The notes under the pieces: generated by a model
The model's input: only the letters and a program-made list of their open reading frames with translations
Database searches by the model: none
What the model was told of the DNA's origin: nothing
Program-made: the position numbers and the translations under genes
Shown here: piece after piece, positions 7,376 through 58,800 of the stretch
Layout: every line of letters begins with the position of its first letter
Position numbering within the stretch: the stretch's first letter is position 1
Source of the DNA: Octopus sinensis
Taxonomy: Eukaryota
NCBI RefSeq assembly: GCF_006345805.1
Contig: NC_043003.1
Location: 88,660,001-88,724,000 of the forward strand
Length of the DNA stretch: 64,000 bases
Reading direction: 5' to 3'

Positions 7376-7410
<35 letters not shown>

Positions 7411-7450
7411 ATATACATATATATATATACATTTATATACGTATATATAC
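7375..7450. repeat. (TA)n/(TG)n microsatellite
   Basis: Direct reading. Confidence 0.9.
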
Positions 7451-7457
7451 CTATACA

Positions 7458-7860
7458 TTTATAGAGACTTAGTAATTTTAATATTTCTATTATTGAAAAC
7501 AAGTGGATGTATTCCACTGAAACTAGGTAAATAGAAACCTTCGAACAGAGACGTCAGTGGCGACACCTGCTAGGTCTGACTACGCTACATTGACAAGGGG
7601 CAAATACCCTGAAACGCGTCTGTAGCTGTCGGACTGGCAGTGTGAAGCGGCTGACCTCCCTTGTTCGAAGGTTATAATGGATACAGATTGTGTGTATCAA
7701 TAGCTATCTTAAGGCGGTGGCCTCATGGAGCTAATCAGCGGCAGCGTTTATTCTTATATCTATAAGAATTGCCATATTAATATGGCGATAACAATTAATT
7801 TCCAGTAATGCTGCCGTAATCTCTTTTATAGAGACTTAGTAATTTTAATATTTCTATTAT
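7458..7860 (+). mobile_element. 367-bp retrozyme-like unit bounded by identical 36-bp direct repeats
   Basis: tttatagagacttagtaattttaatatttctattat occurs at 7458-7493 and 7825-7860. HHR inside; microsatellites on both sides. Confidence 0.7.
7574..7634 (+). ncRNA. Type I hammerhead ribozyme, U3-A8 core variant (predicted cleavage after 7620)
   Basis: gtctgac-tac-GCTACA-TTGACAA-GGGG-caaata-CCCT-GAAA-CGCG-TC-TGTAGC-t-gtcggac. Stem I is 6+7 bp, stem II 4 bp, and stem III is the palindrome ACGCGT. Confidence 0.85.
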
Positions 7861-7931
7861 ATATATATATATATATATATATACATACATATACATATAT
7901 ATATACATACATATACATACATATACATTTA

Positions 7932-7965
<34 letters not shown>

Positions 7966-8048
7966 CATTTATATACATATATATACATATATATACATAT
8001 ATATACATATATATATATATACATATACATTTATATACATATATATAC

Positions 8049-8079
<31 letters not shown>

Positions 8080-8223
8080 CACATGTACATTTATATACAT
8101 ATATATACATATATATATATATACACATATATATATATATACATACATGTACATTTATATACATATATATATACATACATATATACATACATGTACATTA
8201 TATACATATATATATACATACAT

Positions 8224-8312
<89 letters not shown>

Positions 8313-8318
8313 TACACA
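7860..8318. repeat. Compound (TA)n/(TACA)n microsatellite
   Basis: Direct reading. Confidence 0.95.
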
Positions 8319-8679: not shown

Positions 8680-11600
8680 AAAATGTCAGGAAACTGGTCT
8701 GCGAGGGAGTTGCAATTGTTCGTCCGAAGGTGACTCGCCGAACAATATCATTGCAGCGGCGCTAAAGAGCAATGGTTTTTCGAGGACCACCGCCCACATA
8801 GAGCAAAAGAAACGAGAATTTCTCCGTTCATACACTCTAATCAGGCAACACATGGACACTCTGGACATCATCCTAGGAGGTGACTGCACCAGGGAAGGCC
8901 AAAAGGATGAAGAAAACATCCAGGACCCAACAAAAGACACAACCAAGAAACCTAGAACAAAGGGAAACGATGGCACATGTCCAGCTCCCAACACGACTGA
9001 AGACCAAAGAGGTGTGATGGCCGCAAAAAAAGGAAAGCACCCTAAAATTGATAGGAAACAAGAGGTAAAAGACAAGAAAATTAAAACTAAAACAAACACT
9101 GTTCAGAAAAAACAAAAGAACCCCAGCAAGAACTAAAAGGTCAAAGGCAGAAACATCTGCAAATTCTACCTGAAGGGGGACTGATGGTACGGTGTCGAAG
9201 GTGCAAACTGTCGCTTTTCACATCAGAAGCCCTACCAAAAACCACACGGGCACGAGACAAAAATCCCTCCCTTGGCTAGAACAAAAAGATAAAGAAAAAG
9301 GAAAATATAAAAGAGGGAAAATAGTGCACTGACCACTCCTGAAAGACGATATGAGGATGTAGTGCGCAGTAACACAACAAATGGCCAGCTTCACCCAGAT
9401 TTGAGAAGGGCAGCAGCTGAACAGCAATCTTTTTTGTGCATGGCACAAAAAATTGTTCAGCAGCTGACCTGGCTACAAGCACAAAGCTGGAACTACCACC
9501 ACATAAGGCCACCACCAACAGATGCAGGATGGCCACCACAGACACCAACACACACACCACAAAAATATTTCTACTGAACGTAGGAGGGCTGCTGCGCAGA
9601 AACTGTAAAAGGAAAATCTTATTCCTGAGAGACCTTGTGACATGCAATCAAGCTATATGCATGGCACTCACAGAAACGCATCTTGGACCCGATATAGGGG
9701 ATACAGAAATACACATGCCGCAATATGCAGTCATATGCTCAGATAGAAAAGGAAGGAGCCATGGTGGAGTTGCAATGTACATCCGAGATGAACTCACGCC
9801 CCAGGTCCTGTTGTCATATTCAAACTCAGTGTGTGACACTCAAATTGTACACATAAGACAACTGAATATCGTCATATGCACTACATATCGCCCACCAGAT
9901 GCCCCAAATCACTAACAAAAATAGGAGAAGTCCTCACCAACCTTGAACAACACAACAGTGTATGCTTCATGGGTGACTTTAACTTCCCCAATGTGGAATG
10001 GCTTGGGGGGCAGATGCTCTCAGGGATGACACACCATCAGCAGGCACAGGCAGAGTCCCTGCTCCATCTCACAAATGCCTCTTTCATGGAGCAAATAGAT
10101 CTGCAACCAACAAGGGCAGATAATATACTGGATCTCTGCTTCACAAACAATATGGATATTATCCATAATGTTAAAGTGATACTGACAATGATCTCGGATC
10201 ACAACATAATAGAGCTGTCTATGTATGGACCAAAAGCCCCCATAGACGCACAGCCTATACGAAGCATCCACCATCTCTCCAACTTAAACTTTCATAAAGC
10301 AAACTGGAAGTTGATTGAGAAACAGATCCTCAAACGGGATCGGCCTAAATGTCTCTCCACACCGGACATTAACATGAAACACAAACACTTCATGTCCATA
10401 ATACAAGCCATATGTGACAAATATGTCCCAGTGTGCAGGGCCAGCACACACAAAAACAGGATCCCTAGAGAAAGGAAGATTCTTATGAGACGACGGACAA
10501 GGATTGCGAACCGCCTGAGCAAGCACACCAAAAGCGGTGAGAAGTCTCGGCTCGAGAGAATGCTAATGGAAATTGAGAAAAGTCTGCGTCAGTCCCATGA
10601 AAAGGAGAGAGCAGATAAAGAAGCTTGGGTAATAGAAAATATAAAATCAAACCCTAAAGCTTTCTTTAAGTTTGCCAAAGAGACAGCCACAGTGCACCAG
10701 AGAATAGGACCTCTCTTCCAAAAAGATGGCTCTCTCACAGGAAATCCCACGAGTATAAATGAAATACTGAACGAACAATTCCAAAGTGTGTTCACTACAC
10801 CTCTAGGACACAGGCAAGTAAACAACCCAGAAGAATTCTTTGCCACTTTACCTGCAGCCAAAGAGGCAAAAATTGAGTACATCAACATTGAAGATGATGA
10901 TATCACACTAACCATAGATGAGATTGACACAAACTCAGCTGCTGGACCTGATGGATTCCCAGCGATCCTTCTCAAATTGTGCAAACGAGCCCTTGCAAAA
11001 CTGCTACAGCTTCTTTTTCAGAGCTTTCTTGCAAGTGGTAAGCTCCCAGTCAAATTGAAAGAGGGGGTAATATGCCTTATCCATAAGGGAGGTAGCAGAT
11101 CAGATGCTAAAATTATAGGCCTATCTCTCTGACCTCACACATCAGCAAAGTCATGAAACGAATAGTCCGCAAGAAACTAATCATGTTCCTTGAGTAAAAT
11201 GACTTGCAGTCTGACACCCAGCATGGATTTCGACCAGGTAGAAGCTGCCTAACACAGCTCCTGCAACACTATGACTGGGTGTTGAAACAGCTACTAAATG
11301 TGTTGTGGATGTAATATATCTCGACTTTGCAAAAGCCTTTGATAATGTCGACCACGGTATGATCTGTCACAAACTGCGTGGTCTCGGCATAAGCAGAAAG
11401 CATGGAGAGTGGCTGCACAACTTCCCAAAAGATAGAAGGCAGACAGTTGTGGCCAATGGAGCCACCTCCAAGGAAACACAAATAACAAGCGGTGTTCCAC
11501 AGGGCAGTCTTGCGGCCACTGCTGTTCATAGTGGCCCTTTCAGACATGCCTTCAGTTGTTAAGATGGCCACCCTTGCTAGCTATGCAGATGAAACAAAAG

Positions 11601-12045
11601 TCTCCCACACAACACAAAACCCTGGAAATATTGCACATCTGCAACAGGAGTTGGATACAATTACAGGTGGGCTGAGGACAACAACATGCAGTTTAGTGCA
11701 GGTAAGTTCCAGGCTCTGCACTACCGGCACACCAAGGTAAACAACATGCAGACTGGATACACTGGCCTGGGAAGAATTGTAATTTCTGAGTCAAAATCAG
11801 TGTGTGACCTGGGCATTGACATGAGCAATGATGCCTCTCTCCAAGTGCATATTACTAATTTGGTGATAAAATGCAGACGGCTAGTTGGATGGATTCTCCG
11901 AACTTTCAGAACAAGAGAGAAGGAGACACTGATGGTCCTTTGGAAAACTTTTGTCCTCAGTTGCTTGAACTACTGCTCCCAAGTATGGTTACCACACAAT
12001 ATAAAGCTAACAGCAAAACTCAAAGCAATTCAAGAAGCTACACTA
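8680..12045 (+). mobile_element. CR1-group LINE, near full length but 3'-truncated: ORF1 with CCCH finger, ORF2 APE plus RT, multiple stops and frameshifts
   Basis: ORF1 frame about 8680-9577. APE motifs LLNVGGL, LTETHL, YRPP, GDFNFP, ILDLCFTN, SDHN. RT motifs AAGPDGFP, QHGFRPGRSC, YLDFAKAFDNV, GVPQG, YADET. Homologous to the copy at 1-2035. Confidence 0.92.
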
Positions 12046-12116
12046 AGAAGACATGTATATAGACATGTACACATACATATACACACACACACATATATAT
12101 GTGTGTGTGTGTTTAT

Positions 12117-12490
12117 ATCATCATCGTTTAACGTCTGCTTTCCATGCTAACATGGTTTGGACGATCTGAATGAGGACTGGCAAATCAGATGGCTGCACCA
12201 GGTTTGAATCTGATCTGGTAGAGTTTCTACAGCTGGATACCCTTCCTAACATCAAGCACTCCAAGAGTGTAGTGGGTGCTTTTACCTGCCACCAGCATGA
12301 GGGCCAGTCAGGCAGTACTGGCAACAGCCACACTCAAATGGTGATTTTCATGTGCCACCTGCACAGAAGCCAGTCTAGCGGCACTGGCAATGACCTCGTT
12401 CAAATGTTTTTTCATGTGCCACAAGCAGAAGTGCCAGTAAGGCAACGCTGGTAATGATCACACTCGCATGGTACTTTTTACGTGCCACCA
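12117..12490 (-). mobile_element. RTE LINE 3' UTR and tail fragment
   Basis: catcatcgtttaacgtctgctttccatgc is the reverse complement of the RTE tail at 18880-18917. Confidence 0.8.
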
Positions 12491-16859: not shown

Positions 16860-18917
16860 AAAATTGGATTAACAATAAATAAGATTGACAGTACCTTGGT
16901 ATATAAAGCAATTAAGAGAATAAAAACAGGGAAAGCCCCCGGCCCATCTGGAATCACTGCAGAGATGCTCAAAACTAGAATTGTTTTAAAACCAAGTTGC
17001 AATAGCCTAGTCACTCGTATAGTTAACCAGGAGATACACGAAGGAGTCATACCCAATGACTGGTGTAGCAGCACTATAGTCAACTGCTATAAAGGAAAAG
17101 GTGACGCTTTAGGTACAAATAATTACAGTGGTATCAAGTTGTTAGATCAGGTAATGAAGGTCACAGAGAGGGTCATAGCCCAACTAAATAGAGAGAGAGT
17201 CAGTTTAGATGAGATGCAGGGAAAAGCACCACTGATGCTATATTTCTGGTAAGACAGCTGCAGGAGAAATATCTAGCCTAATATAAACCTCTGTACCTGG
17301 CTTTTGTTGGCATGGAAAAAGCCTTTGACAGGGTACCCCGACCCCTCATCTGGTGGTCAATGAGGAAACTAGGGACAGATGAATGGTTAGTAAGAGCTGT
17401 GCAAGCTGTCAGTAAGGTGAGAGTTGGCAAAGAATACACTGAAGAATTCCGGGTGGAGGTAGGGATCCACCAAAATTCAGTCCTCAGCCCCCTCCTACTT
17501 ATCATAGTCCTCCAGGCAACAACAGAGGAATTCAAGACAGGATGCCCCAGGGAGCTCCTCTATGCTGACGACCTTGCTCTAATCGCTGAGTCACTATCAG
17601 AACTCGAGAAGTTTCGGGTGTGGAAACAAGGATTAGAATCAAAGGGCCTTAGAGTCAATGTAGCTAAAACCAAAGTCCTAATAAGTAGGAAGGCAGGCAA
17701 ACCACAAATCCCTTCAGGTAGAAAGTCCTGCTCGATCTGTAGTAGAGGCGTAAGTAGAAACTCTATAAGATGTACTCAGTGTAAGCTATGGACACATAAG
17801 AGGTGCTCTTACCTCTGCTGGTGACAAAGGGCCTCTCACTCAGAGTAAAAGGTAAACTATATTACACGTGTGTATGAACAGCCATGCTACATGGCAGTGA
17901 AACATGGGCCGTGACTGCTGAGGACATGCGTAAGCTTGCAAGGAATGAAGCCAGTATGATCCGATGGATGTGTATTGTAAGCGTGCATACTTGACAGAGT
18001 GTAAGTACCTTGAGAGAAAAGTTGGACCTAAGAAGCATCAGATGTGGTGTGCAAGAGAGATGACTGCACTGGTATGGTCATGTGGCGAGAATGGATGAGG
18101 ACAGCTGTGTGAAAAAGTGCCACACCCTAGCTGTTGAGGAAACCTGTGGAAGAGGTAGACTCAGGAAGACCTGGGATGAGGTGGTGAAGCATGACCTTCG
18201 AACTTTAGGCCTCACTGAGGAAATGACTAGTGACTGAGAGTTTTGGAAATATGCTGCGCTTGAGAAGACCCGGCAAGCCAAATGAAACCATAACCTCGAG
18301 GCCTGTGCCAGGGACGTAACCAGCCCACTTATGCGTACCCTTTCCTTCATTGGACACTAAACTCTCCTTGCGAAGACCTGTTGAGGCAAGTGAAATCGAA
18401 ATCAAATTCGATGACTGGCATGCGTGCTAGTAGGGAGCACCGTACGAGCGTGGTCGTTGACAGAGTGGCTACCCAGCTTCCGTGCCAGTGGCACATAAAA
18501 GGCACCATTCAAGTGTGATCGTTACCAGTGTCGCCTTATTGGCACTTGTGCTCAGTGTTAGTAGGGTGCTAAGAGCACCATCCGAGCGTGATCGTTGCCA
18601 GAGCGGCTAACTGGCTTCCGTGCTGGTGGCATGTAAAAGGCACCATCTGAGCATTATCGTTACCAGTGTTGCCTTACTGGCACTTGAAAAAACATTCAAG
18701 CGAGGTCGTTACCAGTACCGCCTGACTGGTCCCTGTGCCGGAGGCATGTAAAGGCACCCACGCCATTCTCGGAGTGGTTGGCGTTAGGAAGGGCATCCAG
18801 CTGTAGAAACTCTGCCAGATCAAGATTGGAGCCTGGCGCAGCCATCTGGTTCGCCAGCCCTCAGTCATATTGTCCAACCAGTGCTAGCATGGAAAGCGGA
18901 CATTAAACGATGATGAC
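16860..18917 (+). mobile_element. RTE LINE, 5'-truncated, with tandem ~60-bp repeats in the 3' UTR
   Basis: GKAPGPSGITAEML, PNDWCSSTIV, EKAFDRVP, ELLYADDLALIA. Repeated tggcac-taaaaggcacc units at 18480-18760; (ATG)n tail. Confidence 0.93.
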
Positions 18918-30856: not shown

Positions 30857-32124
30857 CCCTTTCATTACCAAACCGCCCAAAAATTTTGGTTCATGTGACC
30901 AAGCCGACCAAACCTGCCCATATTTACCTATTCATATTTAAATGAGAATATGAGAGCAAATCTCTTTAGTACATTCGTGAAAACACGTGATTATACTTCG
31001 TAAACAGTTCATCTACAGTTTTGTACAAAAATCGAAGTGTAATTTTAATTCCGTGAATTTTGGGAGATTTTTTTCCGAAATTTGTTCCTATTGTGTTTTC
31101 AAAATTTGTAATTCTGACAAAAAATGGATACGAATTTCGTTATATCAAGCAGAGAGTCAGAATTCGAAGGATTTTCTACTGAAGACCTTCATAAATCTAA
31201 CTCTATGACTGAAAAAAACAAAGCACGTGGTATTTGATAATGAATCCGATGTTTCATTTTCCGAAAATGAAAGCAGTGAATCCGAGAGCTCCGACAGCAA
31301 TAAAGAAAATGAATTGGCACCTGAATGGAGTGAAAATTTAAAAACTGTTTCTTTCAGTGATTTTTCTGAAGAAACTGGACCAAGCCACAGTCTTTCCCAG
31401 GAGAGTAAAGCCTTAGACTATTTCTTTTTACTTTTTCGAATAAGCCTATTTGAAATCATTACAGCGGAAACGAACCGTTACGCTAAATGTAAACAAAGCG
31501 AAAGAAAGGATAGTTTGTTATTTCCCACAACCTTAAATGAAATTAAGGCCTATTTTGCCATAAATATAATTATGGGTATCAGAAAGTTACCCATAAATAT
31601 TATTATGGGTATCAGAAAGTTACCCATAAATATTATGTGTATCAGAAAATTACGGCAGAAACGAACCTTTACGCTAAATGTAAACAAAGCGAAAGAAAGG
31701 ATAGTTTGTGGTTTCCCACAACCTTAAATGAAATTAAGGCCTATTTTGCCATAAATATTATTATCGGTATCAGAAAGTTATCCAGAATAACAAATTCTAT
31801 AGTAAAATTTTGTTGTATACCCAATTGAATATTAGCTAATAACCCATTTTCAATAGTTATGTTTGAACAAAAATTTTAATAATTTTATATTTTGTTGAAT
31901 TTACCTGTATCTACCTGCAATTAGAGTCACTTTGTGACAAAAATTATAGTATAGAATTGGTTGAGAACATTTCATTAAATTATCTTCCAAAAATCACATT
32001 AATATATTGATAAATAAAAAAGTTATAGTTGTTTAATGAAACCAGACTAAATTTATGATTATGTTAGAAATTAATTGAAACACATAAGAGGTGTATTTTG
32101 GTCAGAAATATAGTAACGAAAGGG
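30857..32124 (+). mobile_element. Non-autonomous piggyBac element with an N-terminal transposase fragment
   Basis: TTAA at 30853-30856 and 32125-32128; TIRs ccctttcattacc / agtaacgaaaggg. ORF 31227-31727 has LDYFFLLF...IITAETNRYA...TTLNEIKAYFAINIIMGIRKLP. Confidence 0.92.
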
Positions 32125-33348: not shown

Positions 33349-33446
33349 CATTTTGTGTTTCTCCTCTGATAATTTTGTATTGTCTTCATTCAAGTACTGT
33401 TTCTCTTTCTCCAGTTTTTCAATTATTTTGTCTTTGCTTTCATTAG
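33349..33446 (-). CDS. TPR: TPR exon: (A)NESKDKIIEKLEKEKQYLNEDNTKLSEEKHKM
   Basis: AG/GT sites; phase 1-0 consistent with neighbours. Confidence 0.93.
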
Positions 33447-33668
33447 CTACAGATTAAAGAATTAAAATCCAAATAACAATACATATATGAAATTGAAAAT
33501 TAAATCTAATTTCATAAAATTATTAAATATTTATTATTATTAACATAATTAACTATATAGTCAATGACTACAGAAACAGTTGCAATGTGAAATAATAACA
33601 GTTTTACTGTAATAAGAATTTAACCAAACTAACCAATAAACTTTACAATAAAATAGAAATCTACAAAC

Positions 33669-33723
33669 CTTCTTTGAGAGTTTCCAACTTCTTTTCAGCA
33701 TTTTGGTTGAAATTTTCACTTGC
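33669..33723 (-). CDS. TPR: TPR exon: ASENFNQNAEKKLETLKE
   Basis: AG/GT sites; phase 0-1 is required to keep the frame. Confidence 0.88.
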
Positions 33724-34236
33724 CTTGAAAAGTGTTCATAAAAATAAATTACAATACCAATTTGATAACTACTGCAAATAGCTATTTCAACTATTTAGAT
33801 ATATAAAAAAAAACCCTTATCATAAAACATCAACCATTAAATCAAATCAACACTATGTAAAGTATTATAATATTATTGATAAATATTATTTTGTCAGAGA
33901 AATCAGCTTTTCCCTCAACAATATGTGACAGTTTGACTGAAGAGTGAGAAACATTTCAAAACTGTGAGGCTGATACATAAAAGAAAAACAAAATAGTGAA
34001 ACAATAAATTAAATTAAATGTGTATGGAAGATCTATAAACTCTTAATTATTTGCTTGAATAGTATGTATTGCATCAGAAACAAAGACAAAAGTTCCCAGG
34101 TCAGTTTTTACAGTAAAGTATGGACTAGAAATACAATCTTTGTCTCCTTAATAGAGAAATAAAAAATCATTTCTCAATAAAATCTTTGAAACAAAATTTA
34201 TATAATGAAAACAAAATTCATTAAATTTTTTTTTAC

Positions 34237-34331
34237 CTTGTTCTGATCTTTTAAACTATTTTCCAGGCTTTCAGAGATAGCTTTGTACTGATCTACATGT
34301 TTTCGACTCTTTTCCAACTGTTCTTTCAAAC
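34237..34331 (-). CDS. TPR: TPR exon: (G)LKEQLEKSRKHVDQYKAISESLENSLKDQNK
   Basis: AG/GT sites. Matches vertebrate [26 protein letters not shown]. Confidence 0.95.
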
Positions 34332-34872
34332 CTATAATAAGAGCAAGAACAATTAGAAACTAGTAGTTTTGCTGTGTTCTTTTTGATATTCAAAAAGCTT
34401 TAACCTGTGGACATTTGGCTACAGATGAATATAGATAAAGATATCCATGTAGTTCTTATATATCACATGGAAACCTAGTAAGTGTTAATGCATTTAATGA
34501 ATAACACATTAAAAAACTGATGGAAAAATTGTATTCTGTGGCAATTAAAAGTAATATTAAGCATTGACTAATATTGTTTTAGTTGTTACCACATACCTAA
34601 TCAAGTTATTAATGCATCTTACCTTCTATTTTCATGTGAATGGTGTGTTTGTATTATTCAATCTATTGTATTTCTTGTCTATCTATTGGTGTATGTGTGT
34701 GTGTCTATATATATATATATTTTCAGTAAAAACAATTAAGATTCAAGTGAGTTCCAATGAATTCACATGAATGTGGTACTTAACTTAGATGCACCAGAAA
34801 TCTATATGGTATTAACCATAAAATAATGTGGGGTGATTATAAACAAGAAAAAAGTAACAAGAATGGATTAGT

Positions 34873-34966
34873 TGTTCAGTACAATTGTTTCATACGAAGA
34901 ACAGCTTTATTAAAAGCTACAAATATTGCAGTAAATACAAGTGTCCCGTATTCATCAGCCAAAACA
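34873..34966 (-). ncRNA. Type I hammerhead ribozyme on the TPR sense strand (predicted cleavage between 34880 and 34879)
   Basis: Minus strand reads tgttttgg-CTGATGA-[atacg...cgtat]-GAAA-CAATTG-TA-ctgaaca. Core intact; stem III is the palindrome ACAATTGT; stem II is long and branched. Confidence 0.75.
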
Positions 34967-35112
34967 CATGAGTTTTCCAAACATCCTAGTAGGTGAGGCT
35001 ACACTCATGAAGTATCAAAGAGAATTCTATAAAAAGCAAAGAATTTATAGAATTCTCTTCGATACTTCATGAGTGTAGCCTCACCCCCTAGGATGTTTGG
35101 AAAACTCATATG

Positions 35113-35206
35113 TGTTTTGGCTGATGAATATGGGACACTTGTATTTGCTGCAATATTTGCAGCTTTTAATAAAGCTGTTCTTCGTATGAAACAATTGTAC
35201 TGAACA
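35113..35206 (+). ncRNA. Type I hammerhead ribozyme, right arm (predicted cleavage after 35199)
   Basis: tgttttgg-CTGATGA(35121-35127)-[atatg...cgtat]-GAAA(35188-35191)-CAATTG-TA-ctgaaca. Confidence 0.75.
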
Positions 35207-35235
35207 ACTAATCCATTCTTGTTGCTTTTTTCTTG

Positions 35236-35280
<45 letters not shown>

Positions 35281-36839
35281 ATAGTAAAATGTTTCACAGG
35301 AAAATGACAAAGGAACATGGAAAACAGGAAAAAACATGCAAAGGACATGGATACACTCATCCCATATCAGTTATTGATCAAAAATCCTCACAATTTTGAC
35401 ACCTTATCAATAATATTTTTCATTTTGGTGGCAACAACAGCAAAACATTGCTGGAATATAAATGAGTGAGAATGAAGGACAAATTGAGACAAGTACAAAA
35501 AAAAAAAAGACATGGTTTGTAGATTGAACAGTAAAATATATTTAAAAAAATAAAAATACAAGGATGGTAATATAAATATATGCAAATAACCAACAACACA
35601 AGTATTATTTTATACACACACAGAGAAAATATTTTGGCTTTGCGACAGAATTGAGACAAGACATGTGAAACAAAAAACAAAGGGAAACAACACAGATATT
35701 TGTTATACGTATAAATATACATAAAAGGCCTTTCAGCTATAAGACAGAATTAGGACAAGACATGCATGATAGTAACGCTAACAGGAATATATTATATGAA
35801 AATTCAAATGGTAAATTCCGGTGGGGTAAACAATCTGTCGTTGCGGAAAAGGGATGGTAAAAGTGTTTGTGAGAGAGAGAGTTTCAAATGGACACTTTTG
35901 GCATGTGCGTGTGTGTGTGCGTGCACACACACAAATGCTACTGGCACACACAAAGGGGACAATTAGCTGTGTGAATATGCGTGTGAGAAAGTAATGGGTA
36001 TCTGTATATGTGCATATGCCATTACCATTTCTTTGTGTAGGAACAAAAAGAAAATTTTTATGATAAATATTGCTTATCCTCAAGTTATAAATGAGTGAAA
36101 AATTCCATTGCAGTAGTTTCAGTCACTTGTCAAATTTATTTGATTTATTTCCCAATTAAACTGTGAAATATGTACTTGGTAGGGTAACTCCAATAAATGT
36201 TTGATGTAATATTTACTTAGTGATGAACTCAATAATCACCTTGTCTTGATATAGGCATAAAAGCTTTAGATTTATCTCCAGTACTTGCAAAAATAATTGT
36301 TTCTAATTTAAACATAAAATTAGAAATACATAATGAAGAGGGCTACTTGATTACATCAACCTCAGTATTTAACTGGTATATAAATTTACTATTTACTTAA
36401 GGGATGAAAAGGAAGGTTGATCTCAGCAGGATTTAAACTCTGAAAGTAAACAGCTGAAACAAACACCACAATACATTTATTCTAATGGGCTAATGATTCT
36501 GCTAATCATTCACTTTTGTATTTCCTAAAATGATGATAAATAATATCAGATAATTAACTAATATTGATTTTCTTCTTATCATATATCTATTAAGTTTTTT
36601 ACAGCTTCTGCATAAAATATGTTAACATGAAATAACACGAACAAGTTAAAACTAACTCACCTAAAACGAGGGTTTGACATATACAATGTGTTCAAGTTAA
36701 ATATAACAGTTTGCATAAAAGAAAAAGAAAACAATACAATATCCCATCCAAAAATAAAAGTATTTTTTTAAAACTCAAAAAATACCAACTAGATTTATAG
36801 TTGGAAGATAACAAATTACTCTAAGTAGCCATCTTCAAG

Positions 36840-55857: not shown

Positions 55858-58800
55858 CCATCGTCGTCATCATTTAACATTCGCTTTCCCTGCTCGCATG
55901 GGTTGGACGGTTTGACTGACAGTCTGGCAAACCAGAAGGCTGCACCAGACTCAAATCTGATCTGGACGCCCTTCTACAGCTGGATGTCCTTCCTAATGCC
56001 AATCACTCCGACAATGTAGTAGGTGCTTGTCAGGTGCACTGGCATCGACCACTCTCAAATGGTGCTTTTTACATGCCACCAGCATGGGAGCCAGTTAAAC
56101 GGCACTGGCAATAACCATACTCAAATGGTGGGTTTACATGCCACCAGTACTGGCCCAGTCAGGCAGCACTGGCATCGAATGGTGCTTTTTACATGCCACT
56201 GCAATAGGTGCCAATCAGGCGGTACTGGCATTGGCCATGACAATAACTTTACTTCACTTAAGTCATCACAAGCGCAGTTTATAGCCCAATGATTGAAGGG
56301 TACTCTTAAATGGGCTGGTTATGCTGCACTGTCATGCGCCATGGTTACAGTCTCACTTGGCTTGCCAGGTCTCGGTCACTTGTTATCGCCTCTGTGAGGC
56401 CCAACATTTGAAGGTCATGCTTCACCACCTCATCCTAGGTCTTCTTGAGTCTACCCCTTCCACAGGTTCCCTCTACTGCTAGGCTGTGACACTTTTTTAT
56501 ACGGCTGTCCACAACACATGACCATACCGACGCAGTCGTCTCTCTTGCACACCACATCTGATGCTTCTTAGCTCCAACTTTTCTCCCAGGGCGCTCACAC
56601 ACTATCGTATATGCACACTGACATTACACATCCAGCAGAGCATACTAGCTTCATTTCTTGCAAGCTTATGCATGTGCTCAGCAGTCACAGCCCATGTTTT
56701 ACTGCCATGTAGCATGGCTGTTCACACACTAGTGTCATACAGCCTACCTTTTACTCTTAGTGACAGGCTCGTTGTCAGTAGCAGAGGTAGATCTCTGAAC
56801 TTTGCCCATGCTATTCTTATTCTGGCAGCTACACTCTCATAGCATCCAGCCCTGCTACTTATTTGGCTGCCTAGGTAATAGAAGCTATCAACTACTACTA
56901 TTTTATCCCCATGCCATGTGATGGAAGCTGTTTTCTGCACATTTTCAGTGTTTATTGTCCCTGAGCATTTGCCACACAAAAACTATCTTCCCAGTAAGCA
57001 TTCCTTTGATATTGCTGCACCTCTTGTGTCCATAGCTTACACCGGGTACATCCTATGGAGTTTCTACTCATGCTTTTTCTACAGATCAAGCAGGGCCATT
57101 TATCTGAAAGGATTTGGGATTTGACTGCCTTCCTATTTACTAAGACTTTGGTTTTTGCTAGGTTAACCCTAGGGCCCTTCTATTCTAGACCTTGCTTCCA
57201 CACCTGAAACTTTTCTAGTTCTGACAGTGACTCAGCTATTAGAGCAAGGTCATCAGCATAGAGGAGCTCCCAGGGTTAGCCAGGATTCCTCTGTTATTGC
57301 CTGGAGGACTATGATGAATAAGAGAGGGCTGAGGACTGATCCTTGGTGGACCTGTACACCTACCTCAAATTTTTCACTATGCTCGTTTCAACTCTCACCT
57401 TATTGACAGCATCCCAGTACATGGCTTGTATAGCTCTCACTAACCTTTAATCTATACCTAGTTTTCCCATTGACCACCAGATAAGGGATCCGGGGACTCT
57501 GTCAAAGGCTTTCTCCATGTGAACAAAAGCCAGATACAGAGGTATAACTACAGCTGTCTTACTAGAAATATAGCATCAGTGCTGCTTTTTCCTGGCACAA
57601 ACCCAAACTGCATCTCATCTAAACTAACTCTCTCCCTGACTTTCATTACCTGATCCAACAACTTGATACCTCTGCAATTATTTGTATCTAAAGCGTTCCC
57701 TTTAATTTTGTAGCAGTTGATGACGGTGCTGCTACACCAGTCATTGGGTACGACTCCTTCGTGTATCACCTGGTTAACTATACAGGTGACTAGCCTATAA
57801 GCTGACACTGTGAGATATGTTAAGCATCTCTGCGGTGATTCCTGATGAGCCGGAGGGGCTTTCCCTGTCTCCATACCCTTCATTGCTTTATCTACTGTCA
57901 ATTTAGATAGCTGGTCCTTCTGTTGGGTCGACATTCAGCAGACTCTCTTTCTCCTATTCATTCTCTTCATTTAGCAACCTTTCATAGTGGCATCTCCAAG
58001 TCTCTGTTTGCAACCTCATTAAATTCAAGTGAGCCATCATCCATGCAGACACATTTGTCTCCTACAACATCATGATTCTCTCTCTCCCACACTGTCTTGC
58101 AACATGAAACACTTCAAGTATTTGGTCCGCACGACGCAGAACATTGGCAATTTTTTTCTTATCTGCTTCCCCTCTGGTTAAGTAAACCTGTTGCCTAGCT
58201 TCCCTTCTGGCAATCTGATATAATTCCCTGCTACCACCGTTTTTCCAGTCCTTCCATGCCTGTTTCTTTTCCTTAATAACCCTCTCAACTATATTTTTCC
58301 ACCACCACATTATCTTGGGTTGAGAGGGGACTTTGCTCCATCCTTAATGTGGGAACCAAATACATAGCCTCCGTGTATACCATGGAAGCCCGCTGCATGT
58401 TGTCCAACATGCCCATTGAAGTCGCCAAGCCACAAAGCTTGGTAGTCTGCAAGAGGATGTTGTAAAATCGGTCTTTCTGTTCATCATGTAGCCCTGGCTG
58501 AGGGGTATAAGCCAAGATAATGGTTGCTAATCCATGTGCAGCACTTATCTGATGTTAGGTATTCTATCGCAGACTCTCACTACCTTGATTACCTTATCAA
58601 CCCATTCCTCCGCAAGAAGTATACCCACGCCCCTAACCCCATCAGTATTCCCTGCCCAGAAATTCTTATACCTATGTTCTTTGCCTGTGAAGAACCTAGC
58701 AGAACTTCCTCTCCACCTTACTTCTTGGATGCAGCACAAATCTACATGCCTCTGTTCAAGCATCTCAGCAATCTCACCAAACCTACTTTTCAGTGTGCCA

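Follow-up and report, generated by a model that had tools for sequence, protein, structure and literature searches.

A 404-base near-perfect palindrome, at 34838-35241 of the window (the whole 64-kb stretch of DNA analysed here), lies inside an intron of a TPR-like nuclear-pore gene, and each of its arms carries a type I hammerhead motif. We propose, with a probability of roughly 0.6, that a hammerhead-bearing Penelope-like (PLE) retroelement left this foldback as the scar of its insertion, or that a short non-autonomous, retrozyme-like unit mobilised by such an element did. The ribozyme motif would then be inherited element cargo, and its masking by the opposite arm would be a side-effect of insertion rather than a selected function.

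Read on the minus strand, the strand of the host pre-mRNA, the left arm (34838..35033, 196 nt) is sense for a hammerhead motif. Reverse-complemented, the right arm (35044..35241, 198 nt), itself sense for a motif on the plus strand, matches it at 94.9% identity. The 10-nt spacer between them, AAGCAAAGAA (35034..35043), is the centre of symmetry and the hairpin loop. An earlier sequence-only reading of this DNA had given ~191-bp arms, ~95% identity and a 10-nt spacer, all of which agree with our values apart from the slightly longer arms. The left arm has its truncated 5' end at the centre and its 3' end facing outward (leftward), while the outer 3' end of the right arm runs into (TA)12. The outer ends of the two arms are nearly identical (...CTTGTWTATA), and their G+C content is 32-34%.

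Eight substitutions and one 2-nt indel, scattered across the arms, separate the two copies. Six of the eight substitutions are transitions (two of them at CpG), as had been claimed for most arm mismatches, and the other two are transversions. The ribozyme part (~94 nt) carries three of the eight against ~3.8 expected, and the arm alignment shows no difference at the core nucleotides of the hammerhead. This 5% divergence has a neutral-looking pattern and, consisting of differences in DNA, cannot record RNA editing at the locus. An assembly artefact was rejected on the grounds that 5% divergence, made up mostly of transitions with CpG decay, is unlike the signature of a read chimera; the nearest run of Ns is at 2319-2418. 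BLAST against the window found no further copy of either arm, or of 33400-36600, within the 64 kb. The two hammerhead-bearing units are inverted, and no direct repeat of the unit is present locally or across the window.

A descriptor scan combined with reading of the sequence places the plus-strand motif at 35116..35204. Its helix I (35116-35120 with 35200-35204) has 5 bp and is followed by the core CUGAUGA (35121-35127), a 60-nt helix II segment with seven closing pairs (35128-35187), the GAA (35188-35190), and helix III, ACAAUUGU (35191-35198), which consists of 2 bp and a palindromic AAUU loop. A17 is at 35199, and cleavage is predicted at 35199/35200. The minus-strand motif, on the pre-mRNA strand, spans 34875..34963, with helix I at 34963-34959 and 34879-34875, the core CUGAUGA at 34958-34952, the helix II segment at 34951-34892, the GAA at 34891-34889, helix III (ACAAUUGU) at 34888-34881, and A17 at 34880. 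The predicted cut, 34880/34879, is exactly the position claimed previously. Defining the hammerhead core as C3 U4 G5 A6 N7 G8 A9, G12 A13 A14, an A15.1-U16.1 pair and H17, the conserved type I core is complete in both arms (CUGAUGA ... GAA-A...U-A), and the three helices occur in the correct order.

The descriptor matched nowhere else on either strand of the 64 kb. Chance would yield 0.075 matches per window under much looser descriptor thresholds, which scales to ~1e-4 per window at the observed stem lengths by our estimate. The motif is type I, with a short helix I, a helix II longer than usual and a very short palindromic helix III. The sequence-only reading was right about the kind of motif when it likened its type I build and palindromic helix III to those of Penelope-like elements and animal retrozymes. 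The build (5-bp helix I, 7-bp helix II closing stem, and helix III of 2 bp plus AAUU) matches hammerheads of PLEs and invertebrates as published (PMC4209133; PMC6765202).

The host gene is encoded on the minus strand. The exon downstream of the foldback (34237..34331, minus strand) belongs to a TPR/Mlp-like gene and is bounded by the acceptor ...ttattatag/GTTTGAAAG and the donor CAAG/gtaaaa. Its AG acceptor is clean, and the minus-strand cut site lies 548 nt upstream of it, close to the ~550 nt reported before. The TPR identity claimed for this gene is backed by a match of the concatenated exons to TPR_MLP1_2 (PF07926) in Pfam (E 7.5e-6), but the score of 26.4 bits is below the curated cut-off of 36. 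Single exons gave only generic coiled-coil noise against Pfam. A search of the PDB with the host gene returned no match, and a search of the protein database returned one, a Logan protein.

Several features of the foldback are those described for PLE integration. PLE insertions are highly 5'-truncated and often have an inverted 5'-truncated copy directly adjacent, giving inverted repeats (PMC8557442). One PLE enzyme, in purified form, cuts the top as well as the bottom strand and extends both, uses the same reverse transcription start sites on each, and prefers AT-rich DNA (PMC11167929). A head-to-head layout with the ribozymes outward is therefore an expected by-product of PLE integration (PMC8557442; PMC11167929). 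In the mechanism we propose, the target would be an AT-rich site in the intron, bordering a (TA)n tract. The endonuclease/reverse transcriptase of the element would nick it on both strands, and each nick would prime a reverse transcript beginning at one shared internal position, a few tens of nucleotides past the hammerhead. The two short cDNA copies would then be joined head-to-head, such that the ribozyme-bearing 3' ends come to lie outside and the 5' ends at the centre. Neutral drift since insertion would have produced the present arm divergence.

The foldback shows the 5' truncation, the inverted neighbouring copy and the AT-rich target of such insertions, though its arms are equal, only one end meets a (TA)n tract, and no 'tail' was identified. 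Inverted arms, outward hammerhead-sense 3' ends and nearly identical outer ends all argue for this origin, as do the confinement of the motif to the arms, the lack of any sign of selection, and a hammerhead fold that is disfavoured in both the isolated arm and the foldback. The right arm abuts a (TA)12(CA)10 compound microsatellite (35236..35279), a candidate for the AT-rich target site; (TA)n arrays make up only ~1.5% of the window. The low G+C of the arms is like that of non-LTR retrozymes (<45%). The arms end ~37-42 nt downstream of the hammerhead cut site; the start of PLE reverse transcription has been placed ~85-92 nt downstream of it (PMC11167929).

The window contains neither a PLE reverse transcriptase nor a GIY-YIG ORF; its ORFs of at least 120 aa comprise only LINE-type RT/EEP (judged by eye) and a piggyBac fragment. 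This absence neither excludes nor proves PLE descent, because it is expected for a truncated copy of ~200 bp. Pattern scans of metagenomes (two), and scans of bacterial/archaeal genomes (one) and of viral sequences (one), returned no relative. Protein searches likewise found no relative, whether made with the long antisense ORF of the arm or with six-frame ORFs of 34100-36150, the latter in case orthologous or paralogous contigs carried spurious gene calls. Since no relative turned up in the collections searched, it is by its architecture only that we assign the unit to the Penelope-like family.

Some details of the locus argue against a PLE scar. Two independent 5' truncations would not be expected to leave equal arms (196/198 nt), which fit better with a full-length short unit in each arm, with snap-back, or with duplication at the DNA level. 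The left end of the foldback is ~105 bp from the nearest array, a (TG)n(TA)n microsatellite (34689..34732) that is the mirror image of the one on the right. TA-rich sequence is found at both outer ends, but (TA)n abutment at the right end only, and no clear target-site duplication is visible at the foldback, where any TA duplication would be indistinguishable from the TA-rich flanks. The motif itself also departs from expectation, with no match to an Rfam hammerhead family, a 60-nt helix II far from the usual 4-8 bp stem-loop, and an A-U pair at 10.1-11.1 in place of the usual G-C.

The foldback might instead have arisen at the DNA level, either as a MITE of the foldback type, in which a non-autonomous DNA transposon consists almost wholly of terminal inverted repeat, or by local inverted duplication of a single hammerhead-bearing retroelement fragment through replication fold-back or hairpin repair. 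Under both versions the ribozyme motif would be passive cargo. Snap-back or a MITE, unlike twin priming, predicts both the equal arms and the 10-nt spacer, and the TA-rich outer ends suit such an origin. Debris of DNA transposons also occurs in neighbouring introns, including a piggyBac-type DDE_Tnp_1_7 fragment (31227-31727). A DNA-level origin is nonetheless unlikely, if a serious contender, as there is neither a second copy in the 64 kb nor an unambiguous TA target duplication, and as outward ribozyme-bearing 3' ends and (TA)n abutment are specifically predicted by PLE biology. A MITE would, in addition, leave the hammerhead motif to chance, at the ~1e-4 per window estimated above.

No hammerhead family reached the Rfam gathering score anywhere in the 64-kb window, and none appeared at E<=10 on 901 nt or on the 116-nt arm stretch alone. 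The other Rfam matches were to generic miRNA hairpins, caused by the palindrome, and weak ones of C/D-snoRNA-like kind. Default folds of the isolated arms did not form the hammerhead (z ~ -1.5). When constrained, it lay above the minimum-energy fold by 11 kcal/mol for the minus-strand motif (34875..34963) and by 9 kcal/mol for the plus-strand motif (35116..35204), an ensemble fraction of ~1e-7 to 1e-8. The covariance-model scan and the folding of each arm, both put forward by the sequence-only reading as checks on its ribozymes, did not confirm them. Of the intact hammerhead ribozyme that it saw in each arm, the conserved core and the helix order stand, but the Rfam match and the favoured fold are missing. 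Helix II encloses 46 extra nucleotides beyond its seven closing pairs. Two 3' partners compete for its 5' strand: the proximal CUUGUAU (35138-35144) gives the better pairing, and the distal CUUCGUAU (35180-35187), which adjoins the GAAA, the poorer one. A helix II of such unusual length, with two competing 3' strands, could represent a variant hammerhead.

The same observations could mean that the motif never was a ribozyme or has ceased to be one: it might resemble a hammerhead by chance within a repeat, or a ~43-nt insertion or duplication in helix II might have broken a former hammerhead; the locus would then be a plain intronic inverted repeat. The failure of Rfam models even on 116 nt, the preference of helix II for its proximal strand and the A-U at 10.1-11.1 all point this way, and by our scaling a multi-gigabase genome would contain a handful of chance matches of equal quality. 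We consider this doubtful, however, because all 11 invariant core nucleotides, H17 and the three helices have been kept in both arms after 5% divergence, and because helix III is exactly of the invertebrate/PLE style. Moreover, the helix II closing stem contains a single arm substitution, the sole informative change between the arms, and this converts U-G to C-G and so preserves the pair.

Because the 3' ends of a PLE scar face outward and the 5' ends are central, the antisense copy is transcribed before the sense copy on either strand, including that of the pre-mRNA. The sequence-only reading was right about this order, and right also that the foldback physically masks the ribozyme. The entire foldback folds as a single hairpin (-310.7 kcal/mol, z = -41), and in the 404-nt transcript this hairpin is ahead of any hammerhead-compatible fold by ~125 kcal/mol. 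In the host pre-mRNA the motif would be buried in an RNA duplex of ~196 bp and almost certainly silent. It would probably be silent even when unmasked, because hammerheads of this class need a dimer to work and the present copy prefers a rival fold. In published work, single motifs of this class show no detectable cleavage, and cleavage is low even for dimers (PMC4209133; PMC6765202). A lone intronic copy therefore needs no inhibitor, and in Xenopus 42-44% of retrozyme copies are intronic (bioRxiv 10.64898/2026.07.22.740005).

This bears on the further claim that the antisense arm is a selected cis-inhibitor, which lets an active ribozyme persist in the intron and which A-to-I editing or transcription kinetics could release, yielding a TPR pre-mRNA switch. 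The transcription order and complete sequestration of the ribozyme by the hairpin are as this claim requires. In Xenopus, retrozymes are also somewhat depleted from introns (bioRxiv 10.64898/2026.07.22.740005), suggesting that sense-strand ribozymes may carry some cost. Yet the single motifs do not cleave, the hammerhead fold costs 9-11 kcal/mol in the isolated arm, the geometry is accounted for without selection as an expected product of PLE integration, and the arms diverge in a neutral-looking manner. Release by editing is likewise unsupported. With up to 70% of adenosines converted in simulation, and inosine modelled as G, the hairpin kept a lead of at least 84 kcal/mol. Adenosines of the core would be lost to editing as well: random editing at 50% would spare all six with a probability of 0.016. 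Kinetics, too, would favour the hairpin, as the sense arm probably zips from the loop while it emerges. An adaptive ribozyme switch would be interesting if true, but it is unsupported by the present evidence and very improbable.

More generally, the inverted pair might be kept for some function. It could act as a self-masked ribozyme that cuts TPR pre-mRNA upon release by a helicase, heavy ADAR editing or slow elongation or, likelier, as a diced or hyper-edited intronic hairpin feeding small RNAs that silence the parent family of hammerhead-bearing retroelements in trans. Taken together, we regard such roles as a long shot. Finally, that each arm should encode an intronic RNA like a box C/D snoRNA, its C box being UGAUGA and its D box the CUGA past the 'cut site', is scarcely credible: the ~89-nt length and intronic location suit, and weak Rfam C/D snoRNA matches cover 35117-35206 (14-18 bits, E 2.4-9.7), but these scores are far under the gathering thresholds of 50-70 bits, no convincing terminal stem adjoins the boxes, the acceptor is 548 nt away against a usual ~70-90 nt, and both the palindromic duplication and the full hammerhead core would be unexplained.

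If it is indeed a PLE scar, the foldback is a compact example of the symmetric product predicted by PLE both-strand priming, which has so far been seen mainly in vitro. It would also illustrate how insertions of this kind, once in a host intron, automatically silence the ribozyme they carry. Its value would be for annotation, since ribozyme scanners and transposable-element pipelines both miss the foldback, and it would introduce no new biological principle.

Among known systems, PLE insertions (Evgen'ev & Arkhipova; Cervera & de la Pena 2014, PMC4209133; Craig et al. 2021, PMC8557442; PMC11167929) resemble the foldback in carrying, close to the element 3' end, a type I hammerhead whose palindromic helix III is short, and in their heavy 5' truncation, head-to-head inverted copies, and AT-rich or (TA)n target. 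The foldback differs in having no identifiable RT/GIY-YIG ORF, pLTR tandem or 30-40-bp 'tail', in that truncation stopped at the same ~197 nt in each copy, and in a helix II of 60 nt compared with 6-8 bp in PLE hammerheads. Animal non-LTR retrozymes (Cervera & de la Pena 2020, PMC7229834; bioRxiv 10.64898/2026.07.22.740005) are likewise short (~170-400 nt), AT-rich, non-coding type I hammerhead units. They are thought to depend on PLEs and are common as dispersed monomers, many of them intronic (PMC7229834; bioRxiv 10.64898/2026.07.22.740005). Retrozymes are defined by units repeated directly in tandem, which makes dimeric cleavage and RNA circles possible, whereas the units of the foldback are inverted and so can give no dimeric ribozyme or circle in cis.

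The proposed insertion also resembles L1 twin priming, in which the second target strand primes reverse transcription to leave inverted, 5'-truncated halves in one insertion. In L1 the two halves copy different parts of the RNA and the result is an inversion, whereas the foldback arms cover the same 3'-terminal segment and form a palindrome. The enzyme class differs as well, with an APE LINE acting in L1 twin priming and a GIY-YIG PLE proposed here.

In Avsunviroid and viroid-like RNAs, as in the foldback, the sense hammerhead is base-paired with the complement of the hammerhead of opposite polarity. Native folding of the viroid type hides the hammerheads and blocks self-cleavage except during transcription of multimers, a principle cited by Cervera 2014 (PMC4209133). 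Those RNAs are replicating circles, with imperfect rods or branched folds under selection, while the foldback is a chromosomal, near-perfect 196-bp palindrome with neutral-looking decay and no tandem. A DNA copy of a viroid-like RNA was rejected as an identity for the locus, given a near-perfect 196-bp duplex unlike viroid rods and the absence of tandem or circular context.

The amniote intronic hammerheads HH9 and HH10 are similar in that a type I hammerhead lies on the sense strand of an intron. They are said, following de la Pena & Garcia-Robles (2010), to be single-copy, ultraconserved, monomer-stable and matched by Rfam models. The motif of the foldback, by contrast, is probably borne by a transposable element, matches no Rfam family and has a helix III of the dimer type. 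In its RNA, the locus resembles intronic inverted-repeat transposable elements, such as inverted Alu pairs and hpRNA loci, where an intron of the pre-mRNA likewise pairs with itself in a long, near-perfect duplex. Such duplexes are expected to undergo ADAR hyper-editing and/or dicing, followed by intron turnover. What sets the foldback apart from them is its ribozyme cargo, which is incidental to its behaviour as double-stranded RNA.

The foldback comprises two inverted copies, a left arm at 34838-35033 on the minus strand (196 nt) and a right arm at 35044-35241 on the plus strand (198 nt), which flank the 10-nt spacer AAGCAAAGAA and share 94.9% identity, differing by eight substitutions and one 2-nt indel. 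The sequence-only reading had judged the identity (about 95%) and the spacer correctly but made the arms slightly short, at about 191 bp. RNA from either strand is predicted to form a single hairpin of -310.7 kcal/mol, with z = -41 relative to shuffled sequences. G+C content is 32-34% in the arms and 37.7% in the window, and the closest assembly gap lies at 2319-2418. The outer ends match to within a few nucleotides (...CTTGTWTATA), 37-42 nt beyond the predicted ribozyme cut site, and the right end continues directly into (TA)12(CA)10. As (TA)n arrays make up only ~1.5% of the window, this abutment is unlikely to be coincidental.

The hammerhead descriptor specified CUGANGA, a helix II segment of 8-80 nt with at least three closing pairs, GAA, a helix III closed by A...U, a non-G residue at position 17, and a helix I of at least four pairs. 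Exactly two matches were found across both strands of the window, one per arm: CUGAUGA at 35121-35127 with A17 at 35199 (plus strand), and CUGAUGA at 34958-34952 with A17 at 34880 (minus strand). The latter places the predicted cut at 34880/34879, in agreement with the earlier proposal. In each motif, five pairs form helix I, seven close helix II, and helix III is the palindrome ACAAUUGU. Relaxing the descriptor to admit the minimal helix III of Penelope-like elements (PLEs) as well gave no additional sites in the window. The chance expectation is 0.075 sites per 64 kb (200 first-order Markov simulations of the window, loose thresholds) and an estimated ~1e-4 per window at the observed motif quality (scaled by ~0.38 for each of seven extra pairs), with thresholds set post hoc when the motif was already known. 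The motif is rare, yet a multi-gigabase genome could hold a few chance occurrences.

In metazoan type I hammerheads, helix III is usually 1-2 bp long and ends in a palindromic loop of 2-4 nt; in the PLE variants, helix II is longer (6-8 bp) and helix I is short (PMC4209133). A single motif tested there showed no detectable self-cleavage, and dimers and trimers cleaved only weakly (PMC4209133); a later review concludes likewise (PMC6765202). The data do not establish that each arm encodes an intact ribozyme, as had been claimed. No Rfam hammerhead family matched at the gathering score, at E<=10 on 901 nt, or at E<=10 with lax filters on a 116-nt arm alone. Default folding of the isolated arms produced no hammerhead; enforcing the three helices cost 8.9 kcal/mol in the right arm and 11.1 kcal/mol in the left relative to the minimum-energy fold, and the hammerhead's predicted ensemble fraction in an isolated arm is ~1e-7 to 1e-8. 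This fold is disfavoured because the helix II 5' strand AUAYGGG (35128-35134) prefers the nearby CUUGUAU (35138-35144, triloop ACA) to the distal CUUCGUAU (35180-35187), which is contiguous with GAAA and less readily paired. The 60-nt helix II segment with these two alternative 3' strands (35128-35187; mirror 34951-34892) is the one feature that may be worth a bench test. If 35145-35187 were missing, the motif would be a compact hammerhead whose helix II has 7 bp, exactly in the PLE style; it may therefore, speculatively, be an ancestral ribozyme into which 43 nt were inserted or duplicated. At 10.1-11.1 the pair is A-U in place of the usual G-C, and the lone difference inside a helix between the two copies compared exchanges U-G for C-G. 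Weak Rfam matches to box C/D snoRNAs at 35117-35206 on the plus strand (14-18 bits, E 2-10) stem from UGAUGA within the hammerhead core and from the CUGA that opens the helix I 3' strand, and give no support for such an RNA.

PLE insertions are heavily 5'-truncated, frequently beside an inverted copy that is itself 5'-truncated, and (TA)n is a favoured target of some PLE clades (PMC8557442). A purified PLE protein cleaves and extends both target strands, favours AT-rich DNA, and begins reverse transcription on each strand at the same internal positions. These lie 111-118 nt into the ORF, and the hammerhead cut site is at +26; insertion in vitro proceeds without need for the hammerhead (PMC11167929). 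Target-primed reverse transcription on both strands from one common internal start site would leave two copies of an element's 3'-terminal segment in an AT-rich target, with their 3' ends joined to the flanks, the hammerhead just inside, and the truncated 5' ends at the centre. As the foldback has the anatomy that such priming would predict, we propose, with a probability of roughly 0.58, that it is the scar of a PLE-type or PLE-mobilised insertion carrying the ribozymes as cargo. Against a PLE origin, the 64-kb window contains neither a PLE ORF nor another copy of the arm, and searches of metagenomes, of bacterial, archaeal and viral genomes, and of proteins retrieved no relatives. Further weak points are the 105 bp (34733-34837) that lie between the left arm and the nearest microsatellite, the absence of a clear target duplication, and arms of equal length, an outcome that independent truncation would not predict. 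Because the arms are equal in length, there is real room for a palindrome of DNA-level origin (a MITE, or snap-back duplication of a single copy), although we consider this unlikely.

Mirror-image compound microsatellites flank the foldback, (TG)n(TA)n at 34689-34732 and (TA)n(CA)n at 35236-35282. The 105-bp stretch is unique and present on the left side only. It could be part of the insertion or duplication event, or be coincidental, the genome being rich in microsatellites. The window also holds a number of very long (AT)n stretches reaching ~450 bp (regions 2034-2709 and 7376-8314), and the 100-N assembly gap falls within a long (TA)n array. The genome is unusually (TA)n-rich, which is relevant to any (TA)n-targeting element. 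Judged by eye, ORFs on both strands (624-1907, 9436-12150, 17312-17824, 57548-57934) resemble fragments of LINE-type reverse transcriptase and endonuclease, and none resembles a PLE element with reverse transcriptase and GIY-YIG domains. Another intron of the host gene holds an ORF fragment (31227-31727, plus strand) that matches a piggyBac-type transposase domain (Pfam DDE_Tnp_1_7, E 2e-7) and contains a 33-bp tandem repeat at 31558-31653.

The host gene is a coiled-coil exon series on the minus strand, and several of its exons, such as those with ...RWKAR... and ...NLQTIQ, may resemble human TPR. Joined exons match Pfam TPR_MLP1_2 (PF07926; E 7.5e-6, 26.4 bits, under the curated 36 bits); single exons gave only noise against Pfam, and no host-gene exon matched the PDB. 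Downstream of the foldback, the next exon is 34331-34237; it has clean AG and GT boundaries, and its acceptor lies 548 nt downstream of the minus-strand cut site, close to the ~550 nt originally estimated. The only database relative is a protein found in Logan runs SRR11869384, SRR11869385, and SRR11869394, whose contigs match 47369-46629 at 82.8% identity and then directly 41749-41503 at 89.5%. The minus-strand intron 46629-41749, which separates two host-gene exons, is ~4.9 kb longer in the window than in this relative, unless the Logan contig is chimeric, and the extra sequence presumably represents TE insertions. Because divergence from the relative (10-17%) exceeds that between the arms (5%), the foldback probably postdates the split. 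In Xenopus, 42-44% of retrozyme copies are intronic, with only mild depletion (bioRxiv 10.64898/2026.07.22.740005).

Pre-mRNA synthesis reaches the antisense arm (35241 to 35044) before the sense arm, as previously described, and the sense arm would zip up while being made, since it emerges beside the loop. In the 404-nt transcript, all hammerhead-compatible structures are modelled at 125 kcal/mol above the hairpin ensemble. The physical part of the proposed cis-inhibition thus holds in the model, where masking is real and trivial; several results argue against the other part, an evolved inhibitor or switch. Ribozymes of this class are inactive as single copies and this one misfolds alone, the layout arises without selection (PMC8557442, PMC11167929), and arm divergence looks neutral: the ~94-nt ribozyme portion contains three of the eight substitutions, against ~3.8 expected. 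The suggested A-to-I editing switch also fared poorly. In simulations with 10-70% of adenosines edited, inosine treated as G, and the ribozyme itself spared, the hairpin's lead never fell below 84 kcal/mol, a very large margin even though I-U pairs are weaker than their G-U stand-ins. Random editing would spare all six core adenosines with P = 0.12 at 30% and 0.016 at 50%. Most arm mismatches are indeed transitions (six, two of them CpG to TpG, against two transversions), but such DNA differences are uninformative about RNA editing at the foldback. Retention of the hairpin to serve as a gated ribozyme, or to supply small RNAs against its parent element, is very improbable.

Vertebrate retrozymes are apparently non-autonomous PLE derivatives (bioRxiv 10.64898/2026.07.22.740005). 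Animal non-LTR retrozymes resemble the foldback in their dispersed monomers, but their defining tandem arrangement is absent here, and we therefore do not class it as a retrozyme. The likeness to L1 twin priming is conceptual. In viroid-like RNAs, hammerheads are hidden by native pairing, as in the foldback. The principle of such hiding is cited in PMC4209133. Along with the foregoing, the closest known systems include PLE insertions accompanied by an inverted, 5'-truncated copy, and their pLTR hammerheads.
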